A stretch of 64,000 bases of DNA from Dimorphilus gyrociliatus (GCA_904063045.1 CAJFCJ010000012.1:930001-994000); one strand, 5' to 3'. Positions 18,821 through 55,209 are shown, counted from the first letter of the stretch. Notes: generated by a model from the letters alone, not told the origin. Program-made: numbers and translations.

Positions 18821-20082
18821 ATGCTATGTACAGTTGCTAGATGTTGTTTGGTTACAGTTAGCCTGATTTTTATGGTATATTTATACTAAAGCAAAAATAT
18901 ATGTACACAGATATATTGATTATTTATATAATTATACTTTATATACTATAATAAATAAAATAATAGTAATAGTCCTAATTTTGGACAGCAATGCGGAGCC
19001 ATCATGCTTATAATGACCGCCTACTCGGTCGCCGACTTTCCTCAGTTTCGAAGATTGATATTATCATTCGATGAAGATATAGAGAATTCTTTAAAACATA
19101 TACCATTGCCAAAATTATTAAATGATACTATGATAGCTATACTTTGCATATCAATGATAATTATTATTATTTCAATTACTGGTCTATCCAATAATCGCTA
19201 CTGCCTATACGTTTACATATTTTCTACCTCATTAGTAACTCTGATTCATGTAATCATTCTTGTAACGGTATTTGTAAAAATGGAGAATTTCAAAAAAGGC
19301 TTAGAAAAGTATATAGAACAGCTCGTTTTTGATTCTTACGAGGGATGCTCCTTTTCGTTTATAGATAAAAAGTTTAGCGTATCAAAAAATGATCTCTCTA
19401 TAGCGATTGACAAAATTCAGATAGCTTATCAATGTTGCGGTGTAAAGAATGGTAATATTTACTCTCAGAACTACAAAAAGTTTAAGAAATGGAACAGCGT
19501 CGTTGATATGAATTTCACAAGTATATCTCCCTATTTGGGAATTCAGAGCGTTCAGGTACGCTTTTAATTAACTATTCTTTATCTCAGGTCTATTTTCACT
19601 CATTCACTTTAGATACTTGTGCCACCTTCTTGTTGTAAATTAAAGGAAAGTAATGTCAAGTTTTACAATCACGCTATTAAGAATAAAGATTTATATGAAA
19701 TCTTTCACGGATGCGTGCTGTCTGCGAGTGCAGCTTCTTCAAATTTTTATCATGGTTGTTATAAAGCTATAAACGATCGAATAGAGACAATTTATATAGT
19801 AGTGATATTGCTATTGTCTGTCGTATGTATCGTTTTACAGGTAATTCTATTTTTTTCTTAAGTATTATAAATGAAATAGCAATAAAAACAAAGACGATAT
19901 ACTTAATTTTGTTCCAGTTGGTTGGCATTTTAAGTGCGATAACTCGCATAAGAGAATTAACTGCCGAAGAGGAAGGAGACATAATAATCTCTTCTAAGCA
20001 CTCTTCCATACCCTTCAGCTATAGGGGAACGCCTTCAGTGAGAAGTAAAGCGGTTCTTGGACCAGTTATTCAATTGATTTAA
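18821..20082 (+). CDS. Tetraspanin (paralog 3, divergent), 4 exons
   Basis: Exons 18821-18874, 18989-19555, 19613-19840 and 19918-20082 are in frame. YQCCG, PPSCC and HGCY motifs; four TM segments. Confidence 0.9.
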
Positions 20083-20459: not shown

Positions 20460-21299
20460 TTTATAGAAGCTTATAGTAACAATATATTTGTATTTAGAAC
20501 TTTATAAATTTTTGAAAATGCAATTTCATAGCTAAGTAGGCTAATTAACAAAAATATAGCAAAAAATTAGATTAAATTTTACAAACGAATCTAGCATGTC
20601 TTGTACAAAATGACGTTTTCTTCTCCTCTTTGATTTAAATAAGATAGTAGGAAATAGAAGTCGAATAGAGATGAAAAGAAAGAATGAGTGGAAGAGAACG
20701 AATTATGTAGATAGATTTACAGGCGGGTAATATACGTATATATATATATATATATACTGTTCCCGTATATTTTCTATCATAATACGGCTTTGTATAAATT
20801 TTTTTCTGAAAAAAATATTTAAAGAAAAAACGAGAAATGAGCGAAACTGAGAGAAAAAAGGAAAAGCTAATGATGCTGATGTAAAAAGTAATCGAAGAAA
20901 AAAAAACGGGTAGGAGGGTATGAGAGAGAATCTAAAGAAGAAACATGGGGGTTCTCTTTTGTACTTTAAGAAAGAATAAAAAAGGGGGCAGCGAGAGAAG
21001 GAAAAGTCCACAACGATTCTCATTTTATTGACAAGGCAAAAGTATTGATTAGGGATATTATTTAAGTCAAACGCTACTCGCGCCAGAAGTGCGCTAGATT
21101 TCTTTCAATGAACATGCAACTTTTCTTGATGAAGCTATACTCTATATTCACGATTAAAGCCTCTTTTGTTTCTTTATTCTTTGAAAATCTATAATTTTTT
21201 ACTTGAGCTAAAAATATTTAAAGAGGAGAAAAACACTTGTAAGATATTAATCTTAAGATAATTTGCATAGAAAAGTAAACAAAACTGAAAAGAATTGAA

Positions 21300-24200
21300 A
21301 TGAAAAGAATCGGAGGATTGATGATTAAATATCTTTGCCTTTTCCTTTTTGGAATTTCCATACTACTGGAAATCAGAGGTAAGTAAACTGATTTATTAAG
21401 TTATTGATATGAGAGATTTTGTATTTTACATCAAAAGAAGTTGATAAGAATAGACAAAGTACCAATTTTATTCCCTAACATTTCTTTATGTTTTTTCTTT
21501 TCGGATGCAAGATTTAAAGAGAGATTATCTATAATCTTCACATATTTAATAGTATATCATATAAAAATGTATAGATATTGCGTAATATGTTTACTTGTAC
21601 GGAATGTTTGGATAAGGAGAGGAGAAGTATTACTTTGTTATTGTTTTTAGTTGTAAATATGTGTTTATTTGACTAGAAAAATGCTTTTAGTTTGTTCAGC
21701 TGTCTCTTATATTTAACAAAAGTAAAATACCTTTTTTTATTACAGTTCTTTATGAGTTTAGTTTGTTTTAAACAGAAGAAATCACTAGATTTAATAGACT
21801 TTATTATATAAAAAAGGTATTATTAATTGGCTATTCGATATTTATAAAAAAGAGATAATGGCTAGTTTTAGCAGTTTTTCCTTCAGTTATTAGTATTCTA
21901 ATTAAGAAGTAAATCCTAAAATGAAGAGATTATATAAAAATAACCATTTTTTACCTATTTATCTCCTTTTCTTTTCTCTTTTGTTACATATTTGATTATC
22001 ATATTTTTTGTCTTTTCCCCTTTGTCTAGGTGAACACATTTTCTATATTTATAATTCATTTTTTCTTCTACTTAGTTTCTATCCTTCAGTACATGATGTA
22101 TAGAAAAGCTATTGCAAGAGTTGTCATCCTATAGGCTATTCATGGTATATAATTTATCGTAAATAGATAATGTGTTGAGAATGCATATTTCTTCATCCGT
22201 CTCTTTAATATTCTAAGCGGTTTGCTATAGTCAATAAATCTATCTTATAGCATCAAATTATAAGCGATCGAAGCATCTAATTTTCCCTGTAAATCTTCTC
22301 CATTTCGGTTTTCCTCTAATAGATAATCCTTTGAGAATAAACATCCTTATTTGCTTAGACCATAGAGCTTAAACTAAAGGATACTTGCAGTTCGTTGACT
22401 TAGTTTTATAATCCATTTGGAATCGTTTTAAGCATAATATTAAAATGGATATTTTTCAAAGAGTTTTTATATTGAAAATGAAGGCCTAAAGCAAAGATTA
22501 TGATTGAGTAATTAGGGTTTTATCTTTTTTTTTTCCATTTGGCAATGTAGTTTCTATTGATAGAATTTTTTACGAATGTTGCGTTACGGTGACACAAAAA
22601 ACAGGCAATTGATTTCTTCGATTCGACAATTCCTCAATTCTAATTAAGTATAAAATAAAAAAAGTAATGATTTTCCCACTATATTCAACTATAAGTATTT
22701 TTTTTATGATTCAAGCTATTGCAAATTAACTCATTCACCTTTTCCTTTTCCACTTCGGCATTCATATTCAATCTCTTTCTTTTTTTTTAACAAAAAAAAG
22801 TCACTTATTTGCCCTTTGTTTGCCCTATTCAGTGCCTTTTTATAGTTGAACAACTTAGTCGATATAAGACTATTTTTTTATGTAGTATCGCCCAACAAAT
22901 CCTTGTTAATCAGGGAATATCGTATAGAATAACACTAGTTGTTTTCTTTTCCTAAACGATTTCTCCTATTGATAACTTAAGGTCAATAAATTAAAAAATT
23001 TTCTTCAACTTGTGTTAATCGGTTAATATCAATATCTTTTTTTTTATTCCAGTAAAAACTCAACCAGATATCTTAAACGAAGCAAAGAATGCTGCAAAAG
23101 TTGCTGTTTTTCCTGTAAATTTATTTATTTTATTAAATTATACTATAATTATGCAAAAATTCTTTAAGGTTAAAAGTTTAATTACAGATTGAGCCCTACA
23201 TCAAAATAAATTACGATCCAAGTTTGGGTGGAAATCAAAAGTTTTATGGTTATCACGTAGATATATTAAAATTAGTTGCCAGGAGTCAACACCTTAATTA
23301 TGTTCTAAATTGGATAAGTAACGGAATAAGCTGCAAAAAATACTCATATGATAAATGGAATTGCGTAATTCGTGAATTAATTAATCAGGTTAGAATTATG
23401 GAGATACTTTATTTATGCCAATATTTTATTTTGAAATTTATAGTCTTTCACTCTTTCTACGCCCCCCTCGTTTTTCACACACACTCTCTCTCTCTTTCCC
23501 TCTCACACATATACACTTTCTTTCTCTTTTTTTTACTTTTTACTTTCTCTCATTCTTTGACTTTATACAATTTCTTATTACTTCTGACCTTATCCAACTA
23601 CTCCTTTTTCCTATTTTAATGATATTGGTAATTTAATTAAATTGTGGAAATGAAATATTTCAGAAATGCAACATTTCTATAGCACCTTTACCTATAGTGA
23701 GAGAATACTTCAAATCTATAAGCTATTCAACGCCAATAGAACAATTTAAATTCGTCGTTGTAGCCTCCAGGAAGTTCGGTACCCTGTCGATCGATTCGCT
23801 GAGAGGCCATCGTTACAGATTTAGTTGTATTTATGGTAGTTTCGTTCATAGAATGCTCAAAAAGGGAGAAAATGAACATTATCGAATAATTCATAAAAAT
23901 ATAAAGGATTACAGAAATTACGTAAAAAATGAATATGATGGATTTCATAGAGCTCTAACAAGAAGACATTTGTTCGTCATTGAGTCATCTTATGCCTACT
24001 ATTTCATTAATAAACGTGGTAGATGCGATTTACATATAGTCTGCGAATTTCCAGAGACATTTCAATATGCTTTTGCTGCCTCCAAGCAAAGTTTACATTT
24101 GCTAAAAAGGGTTGACAAAGGTCTGAGATCTCTACTTGGAAACCGTAGTCTCCTATCGAGTCTGAGAAGGAAATATTGGAATGATAAATGCGTAAAATCA

Positions 24201-25886
24201 CGGGATTATTTTATTCGACCTGGACTACCAACTACCCCATCTTTTCATCCTACAAAGGATATTTATAAGTTCGATTCAACTACGCGAACTTATAAGCTTA
24301 TCGGTTAGTCAATAGTGTTAAACTACTAATTATTGTTGAAAATCTTTCTTCTCCTATCTTCCTCTTTTCCTCTTCTCATATTCTCTGTATTTTTCTGTAA
24401 GAGAAGTAATTTAATTTATTTATACGAAAGATCTTGAGGCAACATCTTTAAAGGAAAATACACAAGTACAAACGGAAGTTGAAAAGAATAGAGAAATTAC
24501 AACTCCAATCAATAATGCGTCATTGAAAAGAATGGATAATGTTATAAAGGCAATTGGTATTGAAGTAAGTTCTTCTCTGAAAATACGATAATAAGAAGAA
24601 AGAAATTAGCACAGTTTATCAAAACTAACTGTATAATATATTATACAAGTATATAATGTTATTCTTTGATTTCCACAGAATCCACCCTATTTATACGTAC
24701 GAACCAAAAATTCGTCTACTGTTGAGTTTTCCGGTTATACACCCGAATTATTCCATCACTTATCAAGCGTAATACCATTTAAATTCAACATCGTATTAGA
24801 ACAGAAAGGCAGAATGGGTAGGAAATTACGAAATGGTAAATGGTCAGGTTTAATAGGCGATGTTATAAAGGGGGTAAGAACAATTAATTAACTTTCATGT
24901 TAGGAATTCTAGTAAAGCATCTAAATAAAATAATTGATAAAATATGTTTTTTGTCACTGATAATATATCATTTTCAGAAGGCTATCATGACAGCAATTCC
25001 ATTAAAAGTGACGAGGAGGTTGGAGAAGGTTCTAACGGCTACGAAACCAATACTCTTTTCGTCCTTAGCAATTGTTGGATGGGGTGATAGTTCTCTAGAA
25101 TCAATACATCTTTCGGATTTACTTAATAGCAGTAATTTCATAATAATTCATAAATCTTCGGCTCAACAAACTATAAAATATTCAAGGAATCCGCTTCTGA
25201 AACAATTATGGCATGTTATTCAAGAAAATAGATCGTTTATGCTTGTACACTCAATAGAAGAAGCTTTAAATAGATTGAAAAAGGAGAAATTATATTTAAT
25301 AATAGATTCATTGAATGCTTTATATTTAACCAATAATTATCATAATAGAAAATGTGGTTTAAAAGCTAAAGATGAAATTATTGAGAGTATGGAATTTTCT
25401 TACGCAGTTAAAAAGGATTCGAAAGATTTGATAAGGTCGATTAACGATGGCCTAGTTAAGCTGAAGCGAAGCGGCATCATAGATAGATTATTCGATAAAT
25501 ATTTCCCCTTATCTCCCTGCATGCTTAATTCAGCCCTACACTCTCAAAGTTTTATTAAAGATAGAACATCTTTGACATCGCCACAACCAACAACAATAAT
25601 TGAATCATTAACAACAATTCAAAGTAACGTTTCAACTACTAATAAGCAACCTCTTTCAAAAATTTTAAAGGAAAAGGATCAATATTCAAATATAAACAGA
25701 AATCAGCCTTTTACACCTAAAAGTTCTTACCAAACAACTCTGACCGGAAGAGATTTAATATCTAATAATACCAGAGGGAAAGTGAACGTTGTTTACAAAA
25801 AATCTAGAAATAGCGCAATTGTAGTTTTAACCGGATATTGCAGTACTCTCTGTTCGTTTTATATTGTCTATTTTCTACTACACTAA
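21300..25886 (+). CDS. Channel-less protein with two tandem ionotropic-glutamate-receptor-like ligand-binding domains (S1S2 fused), signal peptide and GPI-like tail; 7 exons, ~739 aa
   Basis: Exons 21300-21378, 23053-23114, 23188-23388, 23664-24303, 24431-24564, 24679-24873 and 24978-25886 join in frame (2220 nt). S1 motifs: EPYI..GNQKFYGYHVDIL..WNCVIRELI|KCNISIAPL..YSTP and PPYL..FSGYTPELF..NGKWSGLIGDVI|KAIMTAIPL..ATKP. S2 motifs: FVIESSYAYY..RCD..YAFA..KYW..C and LIIDS..KCG..FSYAVKKDS..INDGLVKLKRSGIIDRLFDKYF..C. No internal TM segment. Confidence 0.88.
22150..22430 (-). mobile_element. Possible degenerate RTE-clade LINE 3' relic in intron 1 of the LBD gene
   Basis: The minus strand reads (with stops) LKRFQMD..SKQIRMFILKGLSIRGKPKWRRF..IRCFD and LTIANRLEY*R. 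This resembles the RT C-terminal pattern PKQILF.EL..G.RSRG.PKKRW and A.DR..WR. Similarity judged by eye only. Confidence 0.3.
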
Positions 25887-26338
25887 TATGAAATTATTAA
25901 ATGTTATATTTTAAAAGGAAAGATATATATTTTCGTGTCGCCATCTATATTTCTTTAAAGAGCTTCTTTTGAGCGTATCATCTTCCTTCTATATACTTTA
26001 GATTTTATTGTTTTTTAAAAAAAAAGACAGAAAAGGAGAATACAAAAATAACGATAAAAACAGAACTTTGACTTATTTATGCTTAACTTTAAACAATAAA
26101 AAAGGGAACAATGGTCTGGTATTGAAATTGTATATATGCAATTTTTCTACTTTATCTTAAACAAAATAGCAAAATTGTCTGTAAAAATACTTGACAAACA
26201 CGCTGTCTTCATTTGTATGAATTAAAAGTATTGTATTACGTATATGTCGTTTGTCTCCGAGGTTTTTATTTAAAGTTTGTCAACACAGAACAAATTCCTT
26301 AGTTTTTCTTAACCAGACGATATTAGGGAAGTGTTAAG

Positions 26339-27448
26339 ATGAAAGGGGAAATTATTTTAATCTTTTGCTTAATATTCTCCCTTCAACTCGATTATATTCA
26401 ATGTCAATGGACTCGGCAAGAATTTATTGTCAAGGAAAGGAGCTTTAGTATGAATTGGAACGAGGCGCAACTTCTGTGCACAAACAGTACCAAAGAAAAG
26501 GGTCTATTGTATAAAGAGAATATGAAAGATTTGGTTAAAATTGAACACGCGATGAAAGATAAAAGGCAAGATAAACTCTGGGTTAATTTTATTACCCAAA
26601 AACCAAGATTTTCAGAGTTTAACAAGGAAAATAAAACTTTTTATTGGGAAAGCGGTATATTTCTCTCTTTATTGATCTTATCGTATTTATTATTATGTTA
26701 CAACATACGCTTTATTGAATATAAACAAGTAAATATAAATACACTTTCTTTTATTCAACATAAGGGCTGTCGTTTGATCAAAAAGTTCGAGTACCCCAAG
26801 AAAAACCGCAATGTGCATCCTTATCATATGGAGGAGGTCGATATAATGTTATTTTTGAGGATTGTAGCGAATTCGTTCAGTTTAAATGTAAGTTTTTAGT
26901 TTTCTCCTTTTAATTTATATTTCTTTTCTACAAGATACAATATATAAATTGAAGGCGTTGTACCGGATATCAATGGTAGGTGTATTAAACTACTTTCTGG
27001 TCAAAGAAGAAGAACTTGGTTAGATGCAAGAGAATTTTGCACCGAACGATTAGGAAGGCTGGTTGAATATAGTACCGAAGAGGAAAGGGTACAGTTAAGA
27101 GAAAACTTAGCAGGATATGGCAAAATTTGGCTTGGTTTAATTAATAGAGTTTGGACAAGAGGCCATTCTACAAATGATCCTGGTGCTATGTGCGGATTAA
27201 TTGACCTTACAAGAAAACAATTAGAAATGAGACCTTGTACTGATAGAATAGGAACAGTTGCTATGTGCAATATAGCTATTAAAAGCAAAGGTTATTGTCT
27301 GAATAACAAATCAAAATAAAAAATAGATGTATCTATATGTATATTTATAAATAAATGAGTAATTAATACTTTTTAAACAGAAAAAAGAAAGAGAAGACCA
27401 GCATCTAAAAAATACAATCCGCATCCAATGAAATGGTGCATATTGTAA
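26339..27448 (+). CDS. Secreted protein with two C-type lectin-like domains, 4 exons
   Basis: Exons 26339-26654, 26765-26887, 26955-27290 and 27381-27448. Signal peptide; MNWNEAQLLC...LWVN..YWESG..QCASL..EDCSE..KC; RTWLDAREFC..GRLVEYSTEEE..IWLGL..CGLI..RPC..AMC. No EPN/QPD/WND sugar-binding motifs. Confidence 0.85.
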
Positions 27449-27922: not shown

Positions 27923-29315
27923 ATGCAATCATCTTCTGCGTTTATTACCTTTTGTAATTATCAAATTAATCCAATTTAGAACTACTTGATAAAATAATAC
28001 TGTATATTTTATATTACAGATTTTCTATCTGTTATTAAAGTCCCTTATTACAATTTTCTAAAAGGTATTATGAACAATTCTTTCATGTAGTTATTTATAA
28101 AATTTCTTTCTATTCATTTCATAAATAGCTAAGCCTACTTATATAATCTATTACCATGCTAACGACTGTCTTATTTGGAAAAATAAATCTATAGGCTTAC
28201 ACAGTAATAATTTTAATGAAAACTTTACTGTTGAAGAAGATGGGAATTACTTTGTTAGTTTTAATTTCGGGATATTATCACTGATTAAAGAAAGTATAGA
28301 TTTATGCGAAATTTTCAAAGTAAAGTACTCTTTTGGAATGTCTAATGTGTTTGAAAGAATAGCTTGCTTAAAGAAAAAAATTCGGTTTTCTTTTAATTGG
28401 GGCTCTTACAGATCTCTAGCAGTATCTGGATTTTCTGGTTATATGAGTTTAGAAAGAGGGAAAACTTACTCTCTGGTGCCTTCGAATAATTTCCTACTGT
28501 ATGATGAACCTATATCAAAATTAACTTCATTGTTAATTTTTCGTTACAAAAGTGACATATGGGCGAGGGGTAATCTTGCGCAGTGGAATAACCAAACTCT
28601 TCTAACCGAGTCAATCGGTATTGGAGGTTGGTCTTCACATATACGATTAACAGAGGATGGAATATATTTTCTTAGTACTACAATCTCTTCCAAGAAAGGC
28701 AAAAAGTTTAGAATGGATATCAAGCATTCATCAATTGAAAAAGCTTTTAGCGTACAAAGAACGTCGTCCGACCACTTTGAAGAAACTATTTCTTTCTCAT
28801 ATCTCTTTAAAGGAAAGAGCCGAGACATCCTTACTTTTGATTTAGTCAGTGGTGAATCTGATTTCAATTATGGTAGTAACATTTTTTCGGTTTTTAAACT
28901 AAACGCGTCTAAAGAAAGACCAGTTTTATACGCACAAAGCAAACAATGGATAAAAAATCTTACAAAAAAGGAAACTCTTTCATTTAACTTCTTTCCTATT
29001 AAAATTGGGAATAAATGGAATATAAGTAATTCTACGTATACAATAAAAACACGAGGCTACTATTATATTTCGTTAAATATTGGATCGAAACAATCATATA
29101 AGTTAAAAGTATCAGTTATAAAGAATGATACAATTTTATTTCATGTAATTAAATTTTCTATATCAATAATTGGAGGAGATACTCTCTCTAATTCGGCAAT
29201 AGATCTCCTTTATGAAGGGGATAAAATAAAAGTTGTATCTGAAAAAGGATGTAATTACGATTCTCAAAATTATCCACCAACTTTAATAATCTTTCTAATA
29301 TCTTCTGCTGATTAG
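27923..29315 (+). CDS. Multi-C1q-like secreted protein, paralog 1 of 4
   Basis: Proposed exons 27923-27953, 28020-28064 and 28129-29315. Three repeats: EEDGNYFVSFNFG, TEDGIYFLS, and TRGYYYISLNI..KNDT..LSNSAI.LLYEGDKIKV. The 5' exons are less certain. Confidence 0.75.
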
Positions 29316-29534: not shown

Positions 29535-30930
29535 ATGGAGAGAAAACTTCTACTTTTATCTTTAGTTTGTAAGTCTTTAATAAGAGAAACATATTTTACA
29601 TATTTAAAAGCTTTAACAAAATTGTTCAGTTTTTATAATTGGCGAAAAAGAATGTATTTCGGAGGAAATCGCTACATTTGGCACGTTTGAACCAATATGT
29701 TACAAATTCTCTGATAAACAAACTTTATCTTCCAGAAATATTACATGGACAAACAATACTTCCTTTGACTCTTCTGAGAACCAAACCTTAAATAATGAAA
29801 TTAGAATTCCCAGCGATGATTTTTATTTTATAAGCTTTAATGTTGGATTTGAATTGTTCACTAATGAAGTAGTCGAATTCGTACATTTCATAAGGAAACA
29901 GTATTATACGAAAGAAAATTATTATGATCATAATTATGGCAGATATCGTAAAAGAAATGTAATTAAGACAAAGCTAGTGCCTTCTAGTCTCTTTGCTGTT
30001 TCTATAAATTCTAGTAGAGACAAAGGAATATCCGTAGCAAGCTCTCAAAACTTACTGATGCTAGCTGAAAATCAAACGTACTACATATCACTTAGAAAAG
30101 GAAATTTTAACCATTTCAGTGATAGTTTATCTAAGTTAACATCTATATCGATAATAAAATATCGATCAAATGCATATTTTACTGGTACAATTTCGGGTAG
30201 TTCAAAAGAGAATTTTCTGAAAATAAAGGGTAAGAATTGTTCAAAAATATCATTCTGGTCCTCTCATATTAGATTTACCGAAGATGGATTTTATGTTTTA
30301 AATGTTGTGGTTAATCAGAAAAAAGGTGTTGATTTTCATATGAATATCAACTATGCAGAACATAAACGCTTTTTTCTAAGAAGAACTGAAACTGATTCTG
30401 CAGCTGAAGCAATTTCTATGTCATATATTATAAAACTGAAACAAAGAAATATATTAGAGTTTAATCTAATATCTGGAAATCTAGACCCTTTGAACAATAA
30501 TAACATTTCAATAATGAAACTAAATCCTTCGAAAGTATCCCCACTTTTATATCTAGTTAGTACAAAATCAAAGTTAAACTCTACTGAAAGAAGTAAAGTT
30601 AAGTTTAACTCAAAAGCATATCAAATTGGTAATGAGTGGAATAATGAAACATTTCAATATACAATAAAAGAGACGGGGAAATATTTTGTTTATGTAACAA
30701 TAGAGACAAAAAAATATACCAAAATTGACGTCTCTGTTATGAAAAATGATAAAATCATGTTTGAAGTTTTGAAGTTGTCAAGATCAAAAACTAATGGAGA
30801 TTTTGTATCAAATTCAGCAACGGTTGAGCTGCATTTGGGGGATAAACTAGAAGTTTTTTCAAATGAAAAATCCGACTATGGAGTGTATTATAAGTTAACA
30901 ACCTTTATGGTATATTTCTTATCAAAATAA
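29535..30930 (+). CDS. Multi-C1q-like secreted protein, paralog 2 of 4
   Basis: Exons 29535-29568 (MERKLLLLSLV) and 29630-30930. C-terminal gC1q signature YTIKETGKYFVYV..VMKNDK..SNSATVELHLGDKLEV..TTFMVYFL, plus two upstream degenerate repeats. Confidence 0.85.
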
Positions 30931-31169: not shown

Positions 31170-32484
31170 ATGATTAACCTAGCAGTAGTTTGTCTTTATG
31201 GTAAGTAAACAGTATATACTAGTAATATTAAAAATTATATAATACCTTTATATTTGAACTTGAATAGGAATCTTCCATCTTTCGTATTGCAATTTAATTG
31301 ATGGGGGAAACAATCAAAATTCATATAAAGCTGAACCTAATCTATATTGTTACGATAACTCGTCAAAATATTACTCTGTTGGTGGTATATCGTGGTCTAA
31401 TAATCATTATTACACTAAAGGACGCTCTTGCCCTTTTACGCTATGTTTGGACAATGGAATTCATTTCATAAGTTTAAACTTTGGAATTAGTTTACGCAAC
31501 TCTGGTGAAATTCACATACCATTTAGCTGTTCCAATGGGAAGGATAGTTCGAATAAAATCGAAAAAATTAATTATAAATATATAGACAAATCAGATCTTT
31601 CTGCTATCAATATAAATTTTTTAATTGCAAGTGAACAAGCACATTATTGTCAAATAGATGTGAAATTCATGAATTTGTACAGTGACAATTTATGTAAAAT
31701 GACGTCTATTTCGTCATTTTCATATCAGTCTCCAGTGTATGGCTTGATTCAAATGAAACATTCTGAATCGGCGGAAAAAATGACTTTTACTGTTTTGAAA
31801 TCATCGACAATTGGCGTTTGGGATTCAAATATAAGAATAGTTGAGGATGGTATTTACCTTTTAACTGTGTCAGCTTTTTCTCAATGGTATACAAAGTTTC
31901 TACTAACTGTAAATAGTAGTAATGGTGATGTTTATACTTTAAGAAATAACTATCGTGATTCACCATCAAATTTAATATCGATGTCATACTTATTGAAATG
32001 TAAAATTAAAGAAACATTATCTTTTAACTTGTTGGAAGGCCAACTTCAACAAACTAGTAGTTTATCTATTTTAAAACTAAGTGTGTCTAAAACAAGACCA
32101 GGTCTCTACGTATCAAGTTCGAGTCATAAAAGCAATGTACAACAGGAAAAGGAGATTTCCTTCGATGTTACTCATATATCAATTGGTAATTCATGGAACA
32201 ATAACACATTTACTTATACTATTGATATACCAGGACGCTATTATGTTTATGTTACAATAGAATCAAGAGAAGGTAGTAAAGTTGATGTGGCTGTTCAAAA
32301 AAATGGAAAAACCATATTCGAAATATTAAAATATTCAGCAAAAACGCACGATGGTCATGTTTTAGCTAATTCAGCAATAGTAAAATTTTCCCAGGGTGAT
32401 TCTTTGAGAATTATCTCTAATGCAATGTCTAGTTATGGAGCTTTAAATAAGTCGACAACTTTATTAGTAATTTTTTTGTCCTAG
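31170..32484 (+). CDS. Multi-C1q-like secreted protein, paralog 3 of 4
   Basis: Exons 31170-31200 and 31268-32484. TYTIDIPGRYYVYV..VQKNGK..LANSAIVKFSQGDSLRI..STTLLVIFL; alignable to its neighbours (SD.L.K.TS motif). Confidence 0.85.
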
Positions 32485-34687
32485 AAAACGATTAAAACTA
32501 ATTCAACCGGAAGTCTATAGATTATTGAACTTTGAGAAAAGAATTTAATTGTCAGAGCATGCTATGTGTTTTGTATTATTATAGAAACAAAATGAAGCAA
32601 TAATACACTACAATACAATATATTAGAGCAAGTAAACTTTTTATACAATTTGTATTTAAGCTATATTTGAATAGTATTTTATATAAAAGGTTATTATAAA
32701 CTGATAAAAGATTGTAAATTTTACATTTTTAATCAATAAGCAAAAAGATTATTCATTTATTTTTTATCATCTTCATCTATTGTCTAAAATATAAAATGTT
32801 GTACTTTTAGCCTAGTCTTATTCCAAGTAGGAATGTACGTTGTTTAGATTTAAGTTTATACAGATTTAAAATTCTATATCTGATAATATACAGCCTTTGT
32901 TTATTTCTTTGGCATTTTGACATTATTTGTTTTGAGAAATTGATGTGACAAGAAAAATTCTAAACCAAATATCATTATTAACTGATTTTATCTTATCCAA
33001 TTGGCCATTGAGAAATAAATTCTTAAAAAAACCATGTCAAAACAATGTAAACTTGTATGTTTAACGATTACAGCAAATTCTTCACTTTTAATTACCATAA
33101 TTGTACTCAAAAAGGAGAAATTAGTGCTTTTACATCCAGGTTACGAAATAAGTTTTTCTTGGAAGTGATTTAAGATAGGAATGATAGGATGTATGTTTTA
33201 CATTAGGTAACGTTTTCGGTTCGCTATTTTATAGAATATAATATATACACGTACTGATAAAAACCTTTTAATATGATACTGCTATACATAAAATGTTGGT
33301 AAAATATATTGCAACTTACAGGCCTAAAAACTAAATTAGAAAGTTAAATAAAGCGACTGACGGACAGAAATAGAGAAGGAAAGGAAGGAAGGGAGAGAAA
33401 AGAAATTCTTTTCATAAAAAATGGGTAAGTAAAAGAAGGACTGAAGAAAACTTTTTTTGATATTGACTGTGAACTGTAAAAGGAAAATGAAAAAGAAATA
33501 CAAGTCTCTTTCTTATTATAGGGAAGAGGTGGGGAGATGTTCATTACAAATATTAACCCTGCAGTAAACAACTGTAATAGATAGTGATATCAATAAATTG
33601 TGCCAATTATAACGTCATTGCTTTTAGTTCAATGCTTTAATCACAATTTTTTAAGTGTCTTTAAGAAAAAGTCAGAAACCTGACGACCTTGAATGCGGAG
33701 AATGGAGTTGGTAGATTATTTCTTTAGACAAAGGGTTTATGCAAGTGAATGAATGTTTTTAGTATGATAATAAAGAAAAAACACTTCAAAAGAAATAGGT
33801 TAAACCTTAAAAGAAAAGAAACTACTTGCGTAAATATTAAAATCCTAATAAAATATAATATAAATTTAAGTAAATATATGTTTTTCTTTTATTTGTAAAG
33901 AGAAAAAGAGGAAAATTTTAATTCTTCTCTATAAATAATAGTTTTTATCATGTTCTATATTATTGAAAAGCTATATGTATACAAGCGAGAGTCATGTGGA
34001 TAAATATAATTAAATTTCTCAAAGCTTCTCTACTCAAATGAATAGAAAGATTCACAAAAATTCCAAGGAATATACCTACGTTTCTAAGTAAATATATTTT
34101 AGGGAAAGGTAATTTTTACGCTATTTATTTAGCAGATTTGATTATATGACTACAATATTGTAACTGTTTACAATAGAAAGTATCATTGACCCAATAAAAA
34201 TCATTCGCATCTTTGTAATAGTAATATTTACACAACATTTGAATGATATCTCTGAATAGATTTTAATAAGTGATTCATACCGGTTGAGTTATTTTTTTGT
34301 AACATCGGAAAGGTTAATTTTTTTTATCATCAAATATACAAACGCTTAGAACGTAATGAAAAATACACTGTCTTGAACATATACGATACTATATAATCAA
34401 AAACTTTATTAACCTCTTCCCATCCTCTAACCAGAATAAAATTTAACAGCTTTTGAATAATTCCTTTTTTATGTTTGCTTAAATTGCACATTTATAAAAA
34501 GATAGTATAAAAAAACCGATATATTTTATCTATTGTGACATTTTTTTTCTAATTATTCAATCTATTCAATCGAATATTATCGCATTTTACATATTTTTGT
34601 AATTTGAAACGCAATTATTTTTATTATGTTTTGGGAAAATTATATAAAATGCAACAAGTTAAATTTTCATTACAAAGAGAGTGAAAA

Positions 34688-36012
34688 ATGAGAAATCTTC
34701 CATTCAATTTTCTTCTTCTTGGTATTTAACTTTTGAACTTGAAATAGGAATCCTTTCTTTTATAATATATATAACAATTTCTCTCCTTTTAGTTTCAGTT
34801 ATTTACTGGCAAAGATGCGAAGGATATTCGCTGGATAGCTATAACACCTTTTACTCTTTTATGAATTCAACGAAAACTTTTTCCCGTGATTTTTCTTGGG
34901 ATTCACTTATTACAACTTCGAAAAGTAGATATGCGAAAACGTCAGCTTATGATAAGTTGTATTTTATGAATGTAAACATCGGGGTTCACTCAAATACCGA
35001 AGGAATGATAAATGTTCATTTACATTCCTCCGAATTAATGGAAGGAGAAAAGATTAGACGTAGAAGGCATTCTTTGTTTTTTAACTCTGTGGGTCAAAAT
35101 GGAATTTCAGTTGTTAACTGGGCTAAACTTATTCGTGATGTTGATTTAGATCATTTCTTTCTGACAGCTGAAGAGAGAATAGATGGAGAGCTGACACAAG
35201 TTTACAGCGATAGTTTATCAAAACTTACAAATATGATCTTATTTAGATATCTTACCAGGCAATATCTTTTTGGAACAATGATAGAAAGCAAGTCGTATCC
35301 GGATAGGGTCGTTTTAGCTATCGATGAAGTATGTGGAATTGGTTACGACAACGAGATGATTCGTATAAGTGAGAGCGGTACTTATTTGATAACATTGACT
35401 TCTTGTACTCTAAAAGGGGACTCCCTTATATTATTGGTGAGAACATCCGCCGGAAACTCTTATTATTTGAAAAGAACAAGGCCAACGAAGGGAATAGAAA
35501 CAGTTACTAGATCTTTTATCATTACTGTAAGGGAAAGAGATTATTTAACGATAGACATACTATCTGGTAGTCTATCAAGTCAATGTAATAGAAATTCTTT
35601 TTCAATTTTTCAACTAAGGGATACCCATCACATATCAGCAGCGAGTACCTTACGTACTGGTATACAAAATACAACTCAATTGATAGGATTCAATGTAAAA
35701 AGCTCTGGTCAAGGAATTCATGCAAATTTCTCAACAAACACGTATCATATTCGTTCAGATGGTTTGTATTATATATATATCAGCATCGGACAACAAGCAA
35801 ATTACAATGTCGATGTTTCCGTCCTCGTGAATGATAAAACTGTCTTCGAAATATTAAGATATTACTCATTCGACACCGGAATTGATGTAATCAGCGGATC
35901 AGCACTTCTCAATCTTCGATATAATGATGTCATAAAAGTGGTAAGTCACAAAAATGCAGATTTTGATTCGACCAGTGGAATGACAAACCTTATAGCGTTT
36001 AAACTAAACTAA
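34688..36012 (+). CDS. Multi-C1q-like secreted protein, paralog 4 of 4
   Basis: Exon 1 34688-34721 (MRNLPFNFLLL, same 34-nt phase-1 exon as paralog 2) is spliced at ~34793 or 34799 into ORF 34681-36012. YHIRSDGLYYIYI..LVNDK..ISGSALLNLRYNDVIKV..TNLIAFKL. Confidence 0.82.
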
Positions 36013-39677: not shown

Positions 39678-42600
39678 ATGGAAAGGACTACAAATAATGT
39701 TCCTGCCTACATAAAACCTACATTATCCTCGCTTAGACGCAGTGTAAGAGTAGCTCCATCTTCATCAAGCCTTTTACACTCACTATTGGAAGATAGAACT
39801 TCTTCTTTTTCAAGGGACTTTAAAAGGTCAGCTAGCTTTAACTCGCATCGAAGATATGAACCAGGAATACGGACGGATATAAGTTTTGTTAATAAGCCAA
39901 GAAATCAGGATACCTTTGATAGACATGCACATCTCAAGGTCTACGGGAGACGAAATACTACGAATCCGGCTCATAGAAGTAAGTAAAACTAAGGGAAACA
40001 TGTTTAGACAAGTTATAGGTGTATATTTTTACCTAGGTATACCTGAAAAACATTTTAATTTTGGATAATTGTAAACAATATTTTTAAAAAAACTGAGGGG
40101 GAGGGATAGCAAAGGGGGTGAATATAAAGAAAAGATATGACTAAGCCTAGATAATGTTTAGATAGTATTTATTTTGTATTTAGCTTTTCCGGAATAGACC
40201 TATTCATGTCAAATAGAACATCTTCGTTTTTCTTCTTTAGATATCATCAAGCACTCGAAACTAGTATACTCTTGAATATCTCTTTTTGTTATTAGACCAT
40301 TTACAGTTCCTTTTTATCATTCTTATTATAAAAACGCACCTCACCATATAGTCTTTGATTTCGTATGTTACAGAGAGCAGCATTGAATACCCTCTCAATA
40401 TTGACAGTTTTCTGTCTGGTATCTTTGGCCCATAGGCCGAAAATTTTAAGAAAAGAAAGCGAGGGAGGGGGGGAGAGAGGGCAAAAAAAGCTTTGTTTAA
40501 TAATTTTTTCATAAAGAAAATACCTGTTGGTATCTCTTGAATGTTTTAGGGAAATCACGCTCCTACATGACTTTGCACAGGGATCACTTACTTAAGATAT
40601 TATTAGTCTAATTCAATATTGGTATTAGTAAGTCGGTTTGAAAAGGAGAACTATTGTATGGTCTGCTCACTTTTTGAGAATGTGGCTGAGGAAACTAGTA
40701 AAAAGGAGTCGTAGTCACTCCGAAGAAAATGATCATTTCGATGTATACGATCACAATAATCCGTGGTTAAAACGATCAAATACAGGTTCGTCGAGGCCCG
40801 CTAAATACTGTGCCTATTCTAATACTATAGAAAAATATGGAATATTAATATTTTTTAGGCCGATCTTTTATCGGGTAGTATAAGCGTATGATAATAAAAA
40901 ACGTAGGGGATTTAGTCGGTCTTTTATCATTTTCAACACTAAGTGTTGATTTAAAGAATATTTTTACGTGAATTTTAGTTGAAATGACGGAAGATGACTT
41001 GAATGATGGTGTTATCTTACCTTCGGTCGTTTATCACATAAGGAATATATTAGAGCAATATCCTTGCCATGGACAAATTCTGTATGTAAGTACTAATTCT
41101 TCTATTGTTGCCAATAAATAGCCCAATTCTGTTATTTATTCTGTTTTATTAATCCTAAAATTTTTCTTATTAACTATATTTAGGAACTTCTACAATATGC
41201 CGAAGATACCGGCGCTAGAATATTTAAATTACTAGTTGATTCATCCCAGGATGCTGTTTATATTTATCATGATGTGTCTCTTAGTACTACTGATTGGAAG
41301 GCTTTTCGTAATTTATGCGAACATCCTACAAAACATAAAGATAATCCAAAATCAGGGCACTTTGGTTTAGGTTTTAAAAGTCTTTTTCATCTAACTGATA
41401 TAGTTCATGTACTAAGTGATAGAAAATTAGCTATAATTGAACCTCTGAATAATGCATCAACAACGAAAGCGTTCAAATTAAATGAAAAACCTGAATTATT
41501 TAACCTATTCAATGGTTACTTTGGTTGTAATGAAAGTACCCTTAAACATGGTAGATTCCATGGGACAATTATAAGATTCGTCCTCAGGCAGAATGCTTCT
41601 AAAATTTCTTCTACAATTTATACAAGTCAAAGCCTACAATATGTTATAGACGAATTCCAAGGACATTTGCATACTTCTTTTTTATTTATGAATAATATTG
41701 AAGTTGTAGAGTTATTAGAAACAAGAAGAGATGAAATTTGTTCGTCATCAAGTGCTCATTTAGCCCCTGAATGCTTACAAAAGATCAGGGAGTTTAGAAA
41801 TGACATAAGGAATACTCAAGAAATTTCTAGATCAGCTTTAATTATAGTAAACGTACTTAAATCAGGAAAAGAGAGAACTTATAAATGGATTATTGGAGCT
41901 TACAAAACTGTCAGGAATTTATCAGCCATTTGTAAAAATATTTTAAAGGAGCTTCCCCTTTATCCATACGCCTCTGTAGCCTTACCTATAACACTGGATG
42001 ACTCTACAGTATGGACTCAAGCGGACGGTATGGAAGGAGGTACTTTTGCGTTGTTACCATTGGAACCCCATCCAAACTTTATAAACTTACCAGTTCACGT
42101 GAATGCGCGTTTTGCTCTAGAGTTAACAAAACGAGTTATGCTTTGGCCCCGATCATATTATGGTTCAGCTGATGTTCAAATGGACAAGAGACTAATATGG
42201 AATAAATGTATTGTAAGTGAGCTTGTACCTGTTGCCTATGCCGCAACTGTGCTTGCTTCAATAGAATTTTGTAAAAAAGGACTAATTACAACCGAACAAG
42301 TGTATAGAGCATTCCCTCGACTGGAGAGCTCATCAACGGCCTCTCTGTCAGCAGTTTATGGAAATATCTTTAAACATCCAGTCATATATACTCATTCAAA
42401 AGAATGGGTTACGGTTGAAAATGGTGTATACGATACAACATCAAAACTACCTCTAAACGTTCGTAATATACTTGTTCGCTGCGGTTTAAATTTAGCTAAT
42501 ATACCTGATCATGTGATGGAAGCTGTTCGACACTGTAATATTAGCATTAGAAAAGTAAATGGACCACTTTTAGCTACTGTAATAAGGAATCAAACGGCAA

Positions 42601-45600
42601 TGAGCGAAATTTGTAAGCTAGATCTACTAGACTACTTTTGTACTTCGGATGTCGATTTTCTTTACGGTTTGCCTCTATTACCACTTCAAAATGGAACTTT
42701 TGTAAAGTTCGAATCCTCTGAGAGAAAAATTTATGTCGCAAAGAGAAGCGAGGATGTTGAAATCTTACCAAAGGCCTCCTACGAAAGGATTATGCGTGTG
42801 GACTTAGTAAAGCACGTTAAACAAAGTTTAATAAATGCTTCTAGTCGGCACTTTGCTCAACTTAGAATATTAGATATTTCAGTTATCGCAGAACTGCTAA
42901 AAACATATATCATTAATATTCCCGAACTAAATAAAGAAACTGAGAGATGGTTGGCTAAACTTTGGTTCTATATTCATAGGTTTACACCATTTGACCTCTC
43001 CCGATTTGAAGGCCTACCAATTATTCCTATAGACAGAAAAATTGTTCGTCTCTCCTCGTCATCGGGCATGATTGTTAAACAATTACATCACCTGCATTTA
43101 AATGAGGATATTCAAACTATATTAGTACGGATGGGAGCTAATGTTATAACCAATTTGCCCTCATATCTATCGGGAAATTCGCATCTGTGTAATTTTTACA
43201 TCAAACCACCCACTTCTCATGGAGTTTGTTCAACTTTGGCACATTTATGCAAATCTAATGAGAGTGAATTTTTTGAAAAATTCTTTACTTCGACAACTGC
43301 AAATGAGAAAAAATCTTTACGTCAATTGTTTATGAAATTAGATTATAGCATTGGAAAAAGTAGTCTTAGAGAATTTCTACGTAATTTACCTATATTTGAG
43401 ACTTTAGATGGCCATTTTATATGCGTTAACGAAACAAATATTGCTGTACAGTCTATTAATTTACCAGTTCCTTTATGCAAACCCGTAATTAATTTGTCGG
43501 CGCTTCCATGTGCTGATAGTCTAGCCACTCTATTGGGAGTCAGATTACTTAGCCACCAAGACTTCTTTGTTGAAATTGTATTTACAGCGATAGAGAGTGC
43601 TTATTACAAAATTGGTGAAGTTACCGAGGTTATGATTCATATACTTAAGAATTATTGTTGTACTATGACAGAAACTTTTCAAAGCGCTCTTGCTGGGCTC
43701 CCATTTATTCCAAAAGGAGAGACTTTAATGACTGCTGATAGGTTTTATGACCCTGATTCAATAGTCTTACAACAAGTATTTAAAGGCGAGGATAATTTTC
43801 CAACGGGCCCTTTTAGACAACCGGAAGTCTTGCAGGTTTTAAGAAAAGTGGGCTTAAGAACTGATGAATATGTAGAACCCGAAGATTTGGAATGTTGTGC
43901 ACTTGTGTGTGATAACGATGTTGAAAAGAGCCTAGCTCTTATTGAATACGTTTGTCGAAATTCTTTTCTACTTCACCAGCTGTGCCACGACGCGCCTCTT
44001 TCTGCTAAATTAGCTGGTATACATTGGATACCCGTTTTGAAAGAGAGACCTCCCCAATATCCTGCTTCGTTAGACTGGCATTGTGAAGAACAAATAGTCA
44101 GACCTATAGATATATTCGAGTTCAAATATTCATATGTTGTTGGGTCTTTAAAATCAGCTTGCTGTCAAGAATTACCTGGGAATATTAGTGAACTATGGTT
44201 TCAAACGCCATCTGCCGAAGATATTGTTCAACATTTAAAAAACGTTGTCCGATGTTATTCAGCAACAGAGAAAGGAAAATATTTATATGTAACTACCCAA
44301 ATTTATTCTGAATTATTTAAGAATCCTATACAAAAAGTTAGCAACCTTCTTGAAGGAGAAAAATGGGTTTGGAATGGTCAAGGGTATTGTGCTGTGGAGG
44401 ATATAGTCTTTAAAAGGCCTTTTATTGATTTGCAACCCTTCATTTACCTTCTACCTTTAGAAATGATGCAATTCAGGCGTTATCTTTCAGATTTAGGGGT
44501 AAAAGATGATTGTTACCTGCCTGATGTTTTATATAAGATTTATAGAAAGCACGAAGCTGGTGCTAACGTTGAGATGAGCAGAGATCTTCATTTAGCAATT
44601 TCCATTCTAAACGAAATAAAGTCACGATACGATGATATACATTTAGAAAAACTAAAGAGTTCTATCTATGTACCTATTAAATCAGAAAATCAGAGACAAT
44701 TGAAAATGGATTTGGCGGAAAATTGTCATTATTCAACAAATGGTGAAAATATACCTGGAAAGAATATTGTTCATCAATCTGTTCCCGTTAATACTTGCAT
44801 AGCATTTAAAATAGAAAATGCGATCGCAAAACCTATTCAACAGGACGATATTTATACAACAACAACTGGCGGTGGGACAAGAATCCTGAAAGAAATTATA
44901 TCTGAATTAACTCCAACTTCGGTTGTTCGATATTTTTTATCTTTGGCCGAAGAATGTAAAGCAAATGAATTGAATATTTTATATGATACTAGAGAAAATT
45001 GGAAACAAAAAACTTTAATCACTGAAAAAATGTCTCTAAGTCAAGGAAAATCAATTTGGTTTCACTTTAATTCAACATTATCAAGAGATCATATAGAAAA
45101 AATTACTGCTGAAAATCACCTTAGTGATTCGTTAGGTTTTAGTTGCGTCTACTCAATCACAGAAACACCTTCAATTGCCACAGATGATCAATTAATTATT
45201 CTTGATCCTCAAGGTACCTATCTTCCGCGAAAGAAAGCGGTTCAATTGGATGTTAAAAAGCATTTATCTCTGATTGAAAAGTTGTCTGATCAGTTCGAAT
45301 TGTATAAAAATGTATTTGGATATAACTTTCAAGTTTATAATGGAACTTTGATACGATTGCCTTTACGTATAGCTGAACAGGCAGAAATCTCTGAAATATC
45401 AAATCAACCTCTATCTGATGAGAATGTTAGAAGTTTAATTAATGAAATCGATGATATTTTCCTTATTTTTTGCAATTATGTTAAGACTATAAATATTAAG
45501 ATATTAAAAAGTAAGTAATTTGAATAAGCTAATTAAGTTATAAATAGTCTGGTAAAAAATTGTTTCGTTTACAGATAGTCCTAATAGTTGTGAGCATTTA

Positions 45601-54252: not shown

Positions 54253-55209
54253 ATGTTACGAATTAGCCTACAGAATACGGATATAGAAACGAAGCTAAGT
54301 GGTTCTATTTTGCTGGAAATCGGTAGGAACACTTGCGAAGTAAGTAGGGTCAACGTTCGAATTTTTGGCATTATGAAATGGAAGGGTTCGAAGAAGATTT
54401 ATGACCGGCCGATAATAAGTCATACTTTCCCGATTCTGTCTGCCTGCAAATTAACACATGGACGTTATCGATTGCCATTCAATTATGATCATTTGGGTAA
54501 AGTTCCACCGACTTTAAAGCCTGTCTATATGGATAAAGGTTGGTTGTCCATTCTATACAAAGTGGAGGTCTCCTGCTTTATAAATGGATACCACAGTAAA
54601 TGCGAATTACCGTTTAGGATATTACCAAAAGCTGTTCCGGTTCCAGCCTACGGCTATAAACAGCTGAACGAAGTCAAAAGTTTAGTTCATCGTGGTGACG
54701 TTCATACCGTTGAGTTGCAATTATCTAGAACCTATTACTGCATTGGCGATACTTTAAATACTCGAATTAGTCTCAACACTCACAGTAGTATAAAAAAAAT
54801 AACTGCAAAGTTAGTACAAAGGATCTCAACCGTTCTCTGTTCTGACGAAAGAATAATTTCAATAGCTGAAATGAAGCCAGAAAAAGCCAATAATTGTTCT
54901 ACAGAATTTTCGATACCTATCATCAATCTTTCTTCTACAATTTCAAGTAATCAGCTAGAAATTAGCTACAAACTGTTACTAACAGCTTGTACATCCTCGG
55001 GTGATATCTTAACAAAGGTGCCTATAACTATAACTAGTAAACAGTCGTTAGACGATACAGCTATGTATGCTCCAACCGTCGGAAGTAGCGCAAAAGTTCC
55101 ATTTCTAATATCATTTTCGGATGACAAGATCAAGATACCAAAGTGTTTTTGTTGTTTACAAAAGAACTATTCTGAGGAATACGCAATGGCCGATTCCACT
55201 GAATGCTAA
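54253..55209 (+). CDS. Alpha-arrestin / arrestin-domain-containing protein, single exon
   Basis: 318-aa ORF with LSGSILL..VNVRIFG (N-domain start), HGRYRLPFNY..VPPT..GWLSILYKVEV, and VELQLSRTYYCIGDTLN..LVQRI..LEISYKL (C-domain). Confidence 0.8.
   Translation: MLRISLQNTDIETKLSGSILLEIGRNTCEVSRVNVRIFGIMKWKGSKKIYDRPIISHTFPILSACKLTHGRYRLPFNYDHLGKVPPTLKPVYMDKGWLSILYKVEVSCFINGYHSKCELPFRILPKAVPVPAYGYKQLNEVKSLVHRGDVHTVELQLSRTYYCIGDTLNTRISLNTHSSIKKITAKLVQRISTVLCSDERIISIAEMKPEKANNCSTEFSIPIINLSSTISSNQLEISYKLLLTACTSSGDILTKVPITITSKQSLDDTAMYAPTVGSSAKVPFLISFSDDKIKIPKCFCCLQKNYSEEYAMADSTEC

Follow-up and report, generated by a model that had tools for sequence, protein, structure and literature searches.

Results

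We analyzed a 64,000-nucleotide stretch of the Dimorphilus gyrociliatus genome (GCA_904063045.1, CAJFCJ010000012.1:930001-994000; here called the window), which holds a gene encoding two ligand-binding domains (LBDs) of the ionotropic glutamate receptor (iGluR) type without an ion channel. The window has a G+C content of ~30% and is clearly eukaryotic. Spliced transcript contigs of public run X2 over positions 21200 to 26000 place the gene on the + strand at 21300-25886 and divide it into 7 exons (Table 1), joined across six GT..AG introns with consensus splice sites into a 2220-nt open reading frame (ORF) of 739 amino acids. Contigs from a marine metatranscriptome (X1) were 95 to 99% identical to the gene and included the joint between exons 4 and 5, indicating that the organism is marine and that the gene is also expressed in the field. 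Paralogs of the 739-aa protein were not found elsewhere in the 64-kb window by tblastn. We conclude that the locus is a functional, transcribed gene in the compact, AT-rich genome of a spiralian.

Table 1. Features of the channel-less LBD gene and of its neighbors (window positions)
Feature	Position	Strand	Evidence
Exon 1: start codon; hydrophobic signal peptide at the N terminus (residues 1-26)	21300..21378	+	Positions 21378 and 23053 joined in contig; hydropathy peak (Kyte-Doolittle) at residues 3-29
Exon 2: first strand of LBD1 S1 (..AKVAVFP)	23053..23114	+	Spliced contig; 82% nucleotide identity to sister species
Intron 2, 73 nt	23115..23187	+	71/73 identical to sister species
Exon 3: LBD1 S1 core	23188..23388	+	Pfam Lig_chan-Glu_bd, E 7.6e-9
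Exon 4: S1 end, FGT junction, entire LBD1 S2, start of inter-domain linker	23664..24303	+	Single uninterrupted exon in transcript
Exon 4 junction SRKFGTL	23766-23786	+	Within one ORF
Exon 4 Y129, at Arg485 equivalent	23706-23708	+	Alignment
Exon 4 disulfide cysteines C235 and C290	24024-24026 and 24189-24191	+	Family alignments
Exon 5: inter-LBD linker and first strand of LBD2	24431..24564	+	Spliced contig; exon 4-5 joint also in X1
Exon 6: LBD2 S1 core	24679..24873	+	Pfam Lig_chan-Glu_bd, E 2e-10
Exon 7 (24978-25886), first part: S1 end, junction, entire LBD2 S2	24978..25526	+	Collinear with GluA2 S1S2
Exon 7 junction GWGDSSL	25077-25097	+	Within one ORF
Exon 7 L452, at Arg485 equivalent	25020-25022	+	Alignment
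Exon 7 cysteines C563 and C618	25353-25355 and 25518-25520	+	Family alignments
Exon 7, middle: Ser/Thr/Asn-rich stalk, residues 621-715	25527..25811	+	Low-complexity composition by inspection
Exon 7, end: hydrophobic tail (residues 716-739) preceded by SRNSA, then stop; putative glycosylphosphatidylinositol (GPI) signal or tail anchor	25812..25886	+	Kyte-Doolittle
Tetraspanin-like ORF, upstream of the LBD gene	19004-19567		
Secreted-looking ORF, hydrophobic N-terminal leader	26339-26899	+	No Pfam match
Four ORFs with C-terminal C1q domains	28338-29315, 29854-30930, 31447-32484, 34681-36012	+	
Two very long uninterrupted ORFs (1414 and 2699 aa)	41274-53703	+	Sacsin domain in the first, E 1.6e-53
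Arrestin-like ORF	54253-55209		

Each half of the protein contains the two segments, S1 and S2, of an iGluR LBD. Pfam Lig_chan-Glu_bd (PF10613) matched the S1 core exons, exon 3 and exon 6, both above the curated cutoff (Table 1). No match to Pfam Lig_chan (PF00060, which comprises M1, the pore loop and M3 with its SYTANLAAF motif) was found in the gene. In exon 4, and again in exon 7, one uninterrupted ORF carries the final part of S1, crosses a short junction and continues through the whole of S2. Both exons align gaplessly across the junction to the PDB sequences of engineered S1S2 constructs, including GluK4 (5ikb) and GluA2 (4yu0 and many others); therefore, the natural linkers match the artificial Gly-Thr linker in length. 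Since exons 4 and 7 are uninterrupted in the transcript contigs, the possibility that transmembrane (TM) exons are spliced in between S1 and S2 was ruled out.

Structure prediction agreed with the profile matches. AlphaFold2 models were made for the S1-end/S2 exon products, with the first 85 to 90 residues of each lobe 1 lying outside the models, and reached a predicted local distance difference test score (pLDDT) of 84 for the exon 4 product and 88 for the exon 7 product. When the models were compared to the PDB with Foldseek, the 50 best matches of unit 1 were all iGluR LBDs, from kainate receptors (E = 2e-11; root mean square deviation [rmsd], about 2.1 Å), and the 50 best matches of unit 2 were again all iGluR LBDs, mostly GluA2 (E = 6e-12). 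Over the best PDB matches of both units the rmsd was 2.0 to 2.7 Å, and bacterial binding proteins ranked below the iGluR LBDs. The cysteines of the S2 disulfide (equivalent to GluA2 C718-C773) are present in both units as C235/C290 and C563/C618, and they form the only invariant columns of the family alignments.

A Kyte-Doolittle hydropathy profile of the whole protein contained two hydrophobic segments only, at residues 3-29 and 716-739. In the family alignment that includes a canonical receptor (alignment A2), this receptor (P0023) has ~115 residues spanning M1, pore and M3 where the window units have a junction of 3 to 7 residues; all 22 channel-less sequences (both window units and 20 relatives) hold few residues, up to ~20, at the channel site. 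LBD1 follows the signal peptide after only ~15 residues, so an amino-terminal domain is absent. Between the two units identity is 22% (E = 1e-9), and the two introns inside each unit share their positions and phase between units. The product is thus a 739-aa secretory-pathway protein in which a signal peptide precedes tandem AMPA/kainate-type LBDs, and a Ser/Thr-rich stalk leads to a hydrophobic tail at the C terminus. Each clamshell is iGluR derived, with the M1-pore-M3 insert cleanly excised. Lacking M1, pore loop and M3, the protein cannot be a channel subunit.

These results bear out most of the structural claims of an initial annotation of this DNA. It had described S1 running directly into S2 within one exon in both halves (seen here in the transcript and in the gapless alignment to S1S2 constructs), a KFGTL junction resembling the engineered linker (of equal length, with no gap relative to GluK4 or GluA2 S1S2), a retained S2 disulfide pair (in invariant columns), a signal peptide with a single C-terminal hydrophobic tail (the two hydropathy peaks), and no amino-terminal domain (nothing lies between the signal peptide and LBD1). 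The checks that it proposed gave matching outcomes: HMMER placed Lig_chan-Glu_bd in both S1 exons, with no Lig_chan and with SBP_bac_3 below threshold; AlphaFold and Foldseek matched the S1-end/S2 parts of both units to iGluR LBDs; and the transcript contigs contained no TM exons between S1 and S2.

To place the gene among related sequences, we compared it with 1.84 billion representatives using HMMER, which returned one close relative, at 73% identity. Its source, a genomic contig of a second species (L001), holds the entire gene: none of the seven exons and none of the splice sites is disrupted, and the ORF is intact. Exons are 77 to 87% identical between the two sister species, except for the short exon 1 (67%), and introns are 63 to 72% identical with many gaps, intron 2 being the exception. 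The ratio of nonsynonymous to synonymous substitution rates (dN/dS, Nei-Gojobori) between the species was 0.095 for LBD1 and 0.118 for LBD2 and was higher in the linker (0.46), stalk (0.50) and tail (0.85), at a dS of about 0.8; the stalk is 47% identical. This pattern is that of flexible segments connecting two folded domains under functional constraint.

Two noncoding stretches at the locus are also similar between the species. Intron 2 is identical at 71 of 73 positions, with its flanking exons at 81 to 82% and the other introns in the range given above; no stable RNA fold was predicted for it (z = +1.09), and a search of the whole window against Rfam gave no match. A block at ~20990-21133 is 91% identical to the sister species; it lies upstream of the start codon by 170 to 310 nt, close to the 5' end of the transcript contig, and is possibly a promoter or 5' untranslated region.

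The gene belongs to a larger set of channel-less sequences. Nearly all 42 HMMER hits are exon-level ORFs or short proteins whose S1 passes into S2 without Lig_chan, and about 38 related channel-less clusters exist; of the 46 rows in alignment A1, just 2 contained Lig_chan. The features shared by the family (a short S1-S2 linker, the invariant Cys pair, a terminal tail and no Lig_chan) were all found in the window gene (alignments A1 to A4). Among annelids, Capitella teleta ELU10795.1 is a member, and Paralvinella palmiformis KAK2155635.1 (869 aa) has the same layout as the window protein, its two channel-less LBDs being followed by a long mucin-like stalk and a tail. In proteins of three astigmatid mites, Sarcoptes scabiei, Dermatophagoides pteronyssinus and Blomia tropicalis (P0028, P0068 and P0070), a signal peptide is followed by a single LBD, a stalk rich in charge and a GPI-like end; they are 55 to 62% identical, keep the ligand-binding Arg and are labeled "kainate glr-3-like" or "hypothetical." One word-based homolog search recovered the mite orthologs; otherwise, such searches yielded almost nothing beyond the HMMER set. 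The initial annotation had proposed a search of spiralian genomes for orthologs with the same S1-S2 fusion; the sister species, Paralvinella and Capitella carry proteins with this fusion, as do the mites.

Structure databases held similar proteins. Two short AlphaFold DB entries, R7U7X4 (272 aa) and DgyrCDS1714 (316 aa), match over one contiguous LBD-length stretch, and the best shape match in the ESM Atlas belongs to a 147-member eukaryotic cluster in which Annelida are commonest and which carries SBP_bac_3 and Lig_chan-Glu_bd annotations but no Lig_chan. A fly protein, P0012 (Pseudolycoriella hygida KAJ6645490.1, 222 aa, labeled "kainate 1"), also has S1 running directly into S2 and a full R/T/E triad of agonist-binding residues; it ends at the second cysteine and may be a partial gene model. 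The genomic context of two relatives, P0025 and P0005, was uninformative.

Phylogenetic trees were built on about 225 columns. In the maximum-likelihood tree, window unit 2, Paralvinella unit 2 and three stalk-bearing relatives formed a clade (support 100/99). Unit 1 formed a long branch, and its orthology with Paralvinella unit 1 was not rejected by the approximately unbiased (AU) test (P = 0.29). The mite proteins grouped with canonical AMPA-like receptors (96/89) and not with the annelid proteins; by this placement, mites may have lost the channel independently. However, holding the canonical receptors as one clade was not rejected either (AU P = 0.29). Given that neither tree is rejected, the tree and the AU test are compatible with one channel loss or several. 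The tandem form is old.

In full-text literature searches we found no description of channel-less iGluR LBD proteins. The initial annotation had likewise named no described family with this architecture, which agrees with the literature searched but not with the databases, where many relatives are public and have gone unrecognized under labels such as "hypothetical" or "kainate-like." A large iGluR survey drops proteins with fewer than two TM helices (PMC12226733), and a large iGluR phylogeny drops sequences lacking most of the SYTANLAAF motif (PMC6307864); because of such requirements, the family was probably filtered out.

To examine the ligand pockets, the GluA2 contacts P478, T480, R485, S654, T655 and E705 were mapped onto the units through a canonical GLR-1 sequence. 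At the equivalent positions, in this order, unit 1 has P, P, Y, F, V and E, and unit 2 has P, K, L, S, A and D. Pocket residues in the sister species are identical, except for P in place of S at the unit 2 S654 equivalent. The agonist triad (Arg485, Ser/Thr655, Glu/Asp705) is thus not kept in either unit (Y, V, E in unit 1; L, A, D in unit 2). Across the family, the Arg is kept in 31 of the 39 channel-less units in which the column is present, and the combination of R, S/T and D/E in 15 of 39. The eight units lacking the Arg comprise the window's two, the sister's two, the three other members of the unit 2 clade that cover this column (with Q, Y and H) and one further unit; the 654, 655 and 705 equivalents also vary inside the unit 2 clade. 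From these residues, canonical binding of glutamate or other alpha-amino acids by the tandem protein appears unlikely, and many of the single-LBD relatives probably do bind alpha-amino acids. The gene is one diverged tandem member of a larger family with the layout signal peptide, LBD and tail, many members of which keep the amino-acid triad.

The C terminus of the window protein reads ...KKSRNSAIVVLTGYCSTLCSFYIVYFLLH, in which small residues (SRNSA) are followed by 23 hydrophobic residues and the stop, leaving no cytosolic residues. In the sister species the properties of the tail are kept but its sequence is not. Conservation of property and not of sequence is usual for GPI signals. A hydrophobic stretch lies within 6 residues of the C terminus in 25 of the 42 HMMER hits, and the mite relatives have classical omega-spacer-hydrophobic, GPI-like ends; the stalks of relatives, at the same place as that of the window protein, are longer and mucin-like. 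In short family members, the tail begins 10 to 25 residues past the second cysteine, which is the site of M4 in the canonical receptor (alignment A2). From this position, we infer that the tail may be a remnant of M4 turned anchor signal, putatively a GPI-attachment signal. The protein is probably membrane tethered rather than free. Of the initial claim that M1, pore, M3 and M4 are all missing, the first three were indeed absent by the Lig_chan search, hydropathy and alignment A2, but "no M4" may really mean an M4 reduced to an anchor signal.

Among the neighboring features (Table 1), the secreted-looking ORF downstream of the LBD gene is probably a gene, since the region containing it (26111-27413) is 67% identical to the sister contig. 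C1q genes are also located downstream of the sister ortholog (L001 9269-11066). Vertebrate C1q-family proteins bind iGluR amino-terminal domains; because the window protein has no such domain, the adjacency may be due to chance. The two very long ORFs probably constitute one giant, nearly intron-less sacsin-like gene.

Discussion

The reading that we favor for the protein as a whole, and for which we see slightly better than an even chance, is a lipid-anchored, channel-less tandem iGluR-LBD module for recognition at the cell surface, acting as a co-receptor for a ligand other than an amino acid or for a partner protein. With neither a pore nor a cytoplasmic part, the protein can act only by binding. 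According to this model, a flexible stalk would present the two clamshells at the outer cell surface, where closure of a clamshell on a non-amino-acid ligand would be read by a transmembrane partner in cis. Alternatively, the trigger could be docking of the LBDs to a partner, for example through the dimer surface of true iGluR or ionotropic receptor (IR) LBDs. Analogous working is seen in GFR-alpha with RET and in bacterial binding proteins that dock to chemoreceptors or transporters. We rank this surface recognition and co-receptor role ahead of a ligand buffer, and the buffer ahead of a role in structure or adhesion.

A ligand buffer or scavenger, the "AChBP-equivalent" function, would have the clamshells lower the free concentration of a transmitter or other small molecule at the surface, or in the fluid after GPI cleavage, with no partner involved. 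We consider this unlikely for the window protein. It would fit extracellular LBDs without an effector domain, the strong constraint on both LBDs, and the many single-LBD relatives with an intact R/T/E triad, which could bind amino acids, and there are precedents in AChBP and in SmGBP, a truncated schistosome metabotropic glutamate receptor (PMC3206071). However, both pockets of the tandem protein lack the alpha-carboxylate Arg and most other canonical contacts, so it is unlikely to scavenge glutamate or other amino acids. In addition, in the unit 2 clade the Arg site is occupied by L, Q, Y or H and the 654, 655 and 705 equivalents vary, which argues against one conserved small ligand, and the hydrophobic tail speaks against a freely diffusing form. 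Amino-acid scavenging does seem plausible for those single-LBD relatives whose pockets keep the triad. Of the initial proposal of an extracellular scavenger, buffer or co-receptor derived from an iGluR, then, the iGluR derivation, secretory-pathway routing and absence of a channel stand, and the gene is expressed and under purifying selection; the free, AChBP-like buffer conflicts with the tail and glutamate scavenging with the pockets. A structural or adhesive surface glycoprotein, in which the LBDs serve as rigid modules on a mucin-like stalk (in cell-cell or cell-matrix contact, glycocalyx or cuticle) without ligand-driven closure, strikes us as improbable too, and it ranks below the buffer. 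The pocket positions vary among unit 2 orthologs while the domains stay constrained, relatives carry long Ser/Thr/Pro-rich stalks, and four C1q-domain genes lie just downstream in the window, with C1q genes likewise in the sister species; moreover, ectodomains of GluD iGluRs are reported to be able to serve as trans-synaptic organizers (PMC11295041). Against this, the contacts between GluD and Cbln use the amino-terminal domain, which is absent here, and the adjacency of C1q genes may mean nothing. Such genes are very numerous in spiralians.

Two further explanations concern the origin of the locus rather than its role. That the protein is of bacterial solute-binding type and never had a channel, through gene transfer or retention of a prechannel state, is very improbable in our judgment. 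S1 and S2 are contiguous, as in SBP_bac_3 proteins, exon 7 gave a weak SBP_bac_3 match (PF00497; 23.6 bits against a cutoff of 26.4), and AncQR was the top phmmer match for the last 85 residues; nevertheless, the gene has six spliceosomal introns and host-like composition, its S1 exons match the iGluR-specific Lig_chan-Glu_bd, the 50 best structural matches are all animal AMPA/kainate LBDs with bacterial proteins lower, the iGluR-specific disulfide is invariant, and canonical AMPA-like receptors fall within the channel-less diversity in a midpoint-rooted tree. Bacterial contamination or transfer of a binding protein gene is ruled out by the introns together with the iGluR-specific features. 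Least credible of all is a nonfunctional remnant, whether a decaying iGluR gene or an assembly or annotation artifact. The lack of a Pfam match in exon 4 and the loss of key ligand residues could be read in this way, but properly spliced transcripts come from two independent runs, the 739-codon ORF is intact, the intact ortholog gives a dN/dS of about 0.1 in both LBDs at a dS of about 0.8, Paralvinella has the same architecture, and the predicted LBD folds are confident. Spliced transcripts, the intact ortholog and the dN/dS thus rule out a pseudogene or artifact.

Several points nevertheless weigh against the surface co-receptor role that we favor. The modeled fold comes from the S1-end/S2 parts. 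GPI anchoring is predicted by inspection only, and the spacer after the candidate omega site, N714, is unusually hydrophobic; a plain tail anchor, or a cleaved and released form, is possible in place of GPI. Finally, LBDs that are strongly constrained overall but variable in their canonical pocket positions would fit a purely structural or adhesive role equally well.

In a wider and more tentative picture, which we hold to be possible rather than probable, protostomes (annelids at least, and perhaps mites independently) would possess a lipid-anchored family of channel-less LBDs. Its single-LBD members would be surface binders of amino acids, serving as chemosensory or uptake co-receptors or as transmitter buffers, and the tandem form would adopt an intramolecular LBD pseudo-dimer, functioning either as a non-amino-acid sensor or as a modulator docking on the LBD layers of true iGluRs or IRs.

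Research on iGluRs has relied on artificial S1S2 constructs for 25 years. A natural, selected version of S1S2 indicates that the LBD can exist without the channel, as AChBP showed for Cys-loop receptors. By sequence, the family appears to be a new architectural variant within the known iGluR superfamily, with the window member diverged and degenerate at the ligand site. It offers a testable case of a ligand-gated channel dismantled into a binding or co-receptor module, by a route of clean M1-M3 excision, perhaps reuse of M4 to signal anchoring, and a duplication in tandem. The family further reveals a blind spot of surveys, in which filters on TM count or SYTANLAAF discard channel-less sequences. 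The single-LBD relatives that keep the triad are potential naturally soluble scaffolds for crystallization and biosensors, and in marine worms they may serve to sense or take up amino acids at the cell surface.

Among known systems, the engineered S1S2 cores (GluA2 S1S2J and GluK4 S1S2; PDB 4yu0 and 5ikb) share with the window protein the two-lobed fold, the linker length and the S2 disulfide. The window protein differs in being natural and tandem, in having a signal peptide, stalk and tail, and in that the Arg485, Thr480 and Ser654/Thr655 contacts are replaced. Canonical AMPA and kainate receptors have the homologous LBD, whereas the window protein is without M1, pore loop and M3 and carries two LBDs per chain. 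Many chemosensory IRs resemble it in lacking an amino-terminal domain and in having lost the R/T/E agonist triad. The vertebrate kainate-binding proteins of frog, chick and goldfish are small and lack an amino-terminal domain but keep all membrane segments; the window protein has none of M1-M3.

AChBP of mollusks and annelids is likewise a receptor-derived extracellular binding domain without a channel, found in spiralians. However, AChBP is a pentamer, free and soluble, in which the transmitter site is retained, while the window protein belongs to an unrelated superfamily, is probably tethered and has lost the canonical contacts. The marks of an AChBP-like decoy were not found in it: the last 24 residues are hydrophobic up to the stop, and canonical contacts are replaced in both units. 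The nearest precedent that we found is SmGBP of Schistosoma mansoni, a metabotropic glutamate receptor truncated so as to lack the transmembrane signaling part (PMC3206071). SmGBP is the Venus-flytrap module of a class-C G protein-coupled receptor with a predicted glutamate site, whereas the window protein is a duplicated iGluR S1S2 clamshell without that site. Two class-II clamshells in series near the membrane are shared with GlnPQ (PDB 6h30, among the exon matches), in which, unlike in the window protein, they are fused to a permease; the window protein has no membrane domain, and its clamshells are of animal iGluR type. In GPI-anchored co-receptors and truncated receptors such as GFR-alpha, CNTFR-alpha, T-cadherin and Lynx1, a lipid-tethered binding module acts via a partner. 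The likeness of the window protein to these is one of analogy only, with no sequence relationship and with GPI attachment predicted for the window protein.

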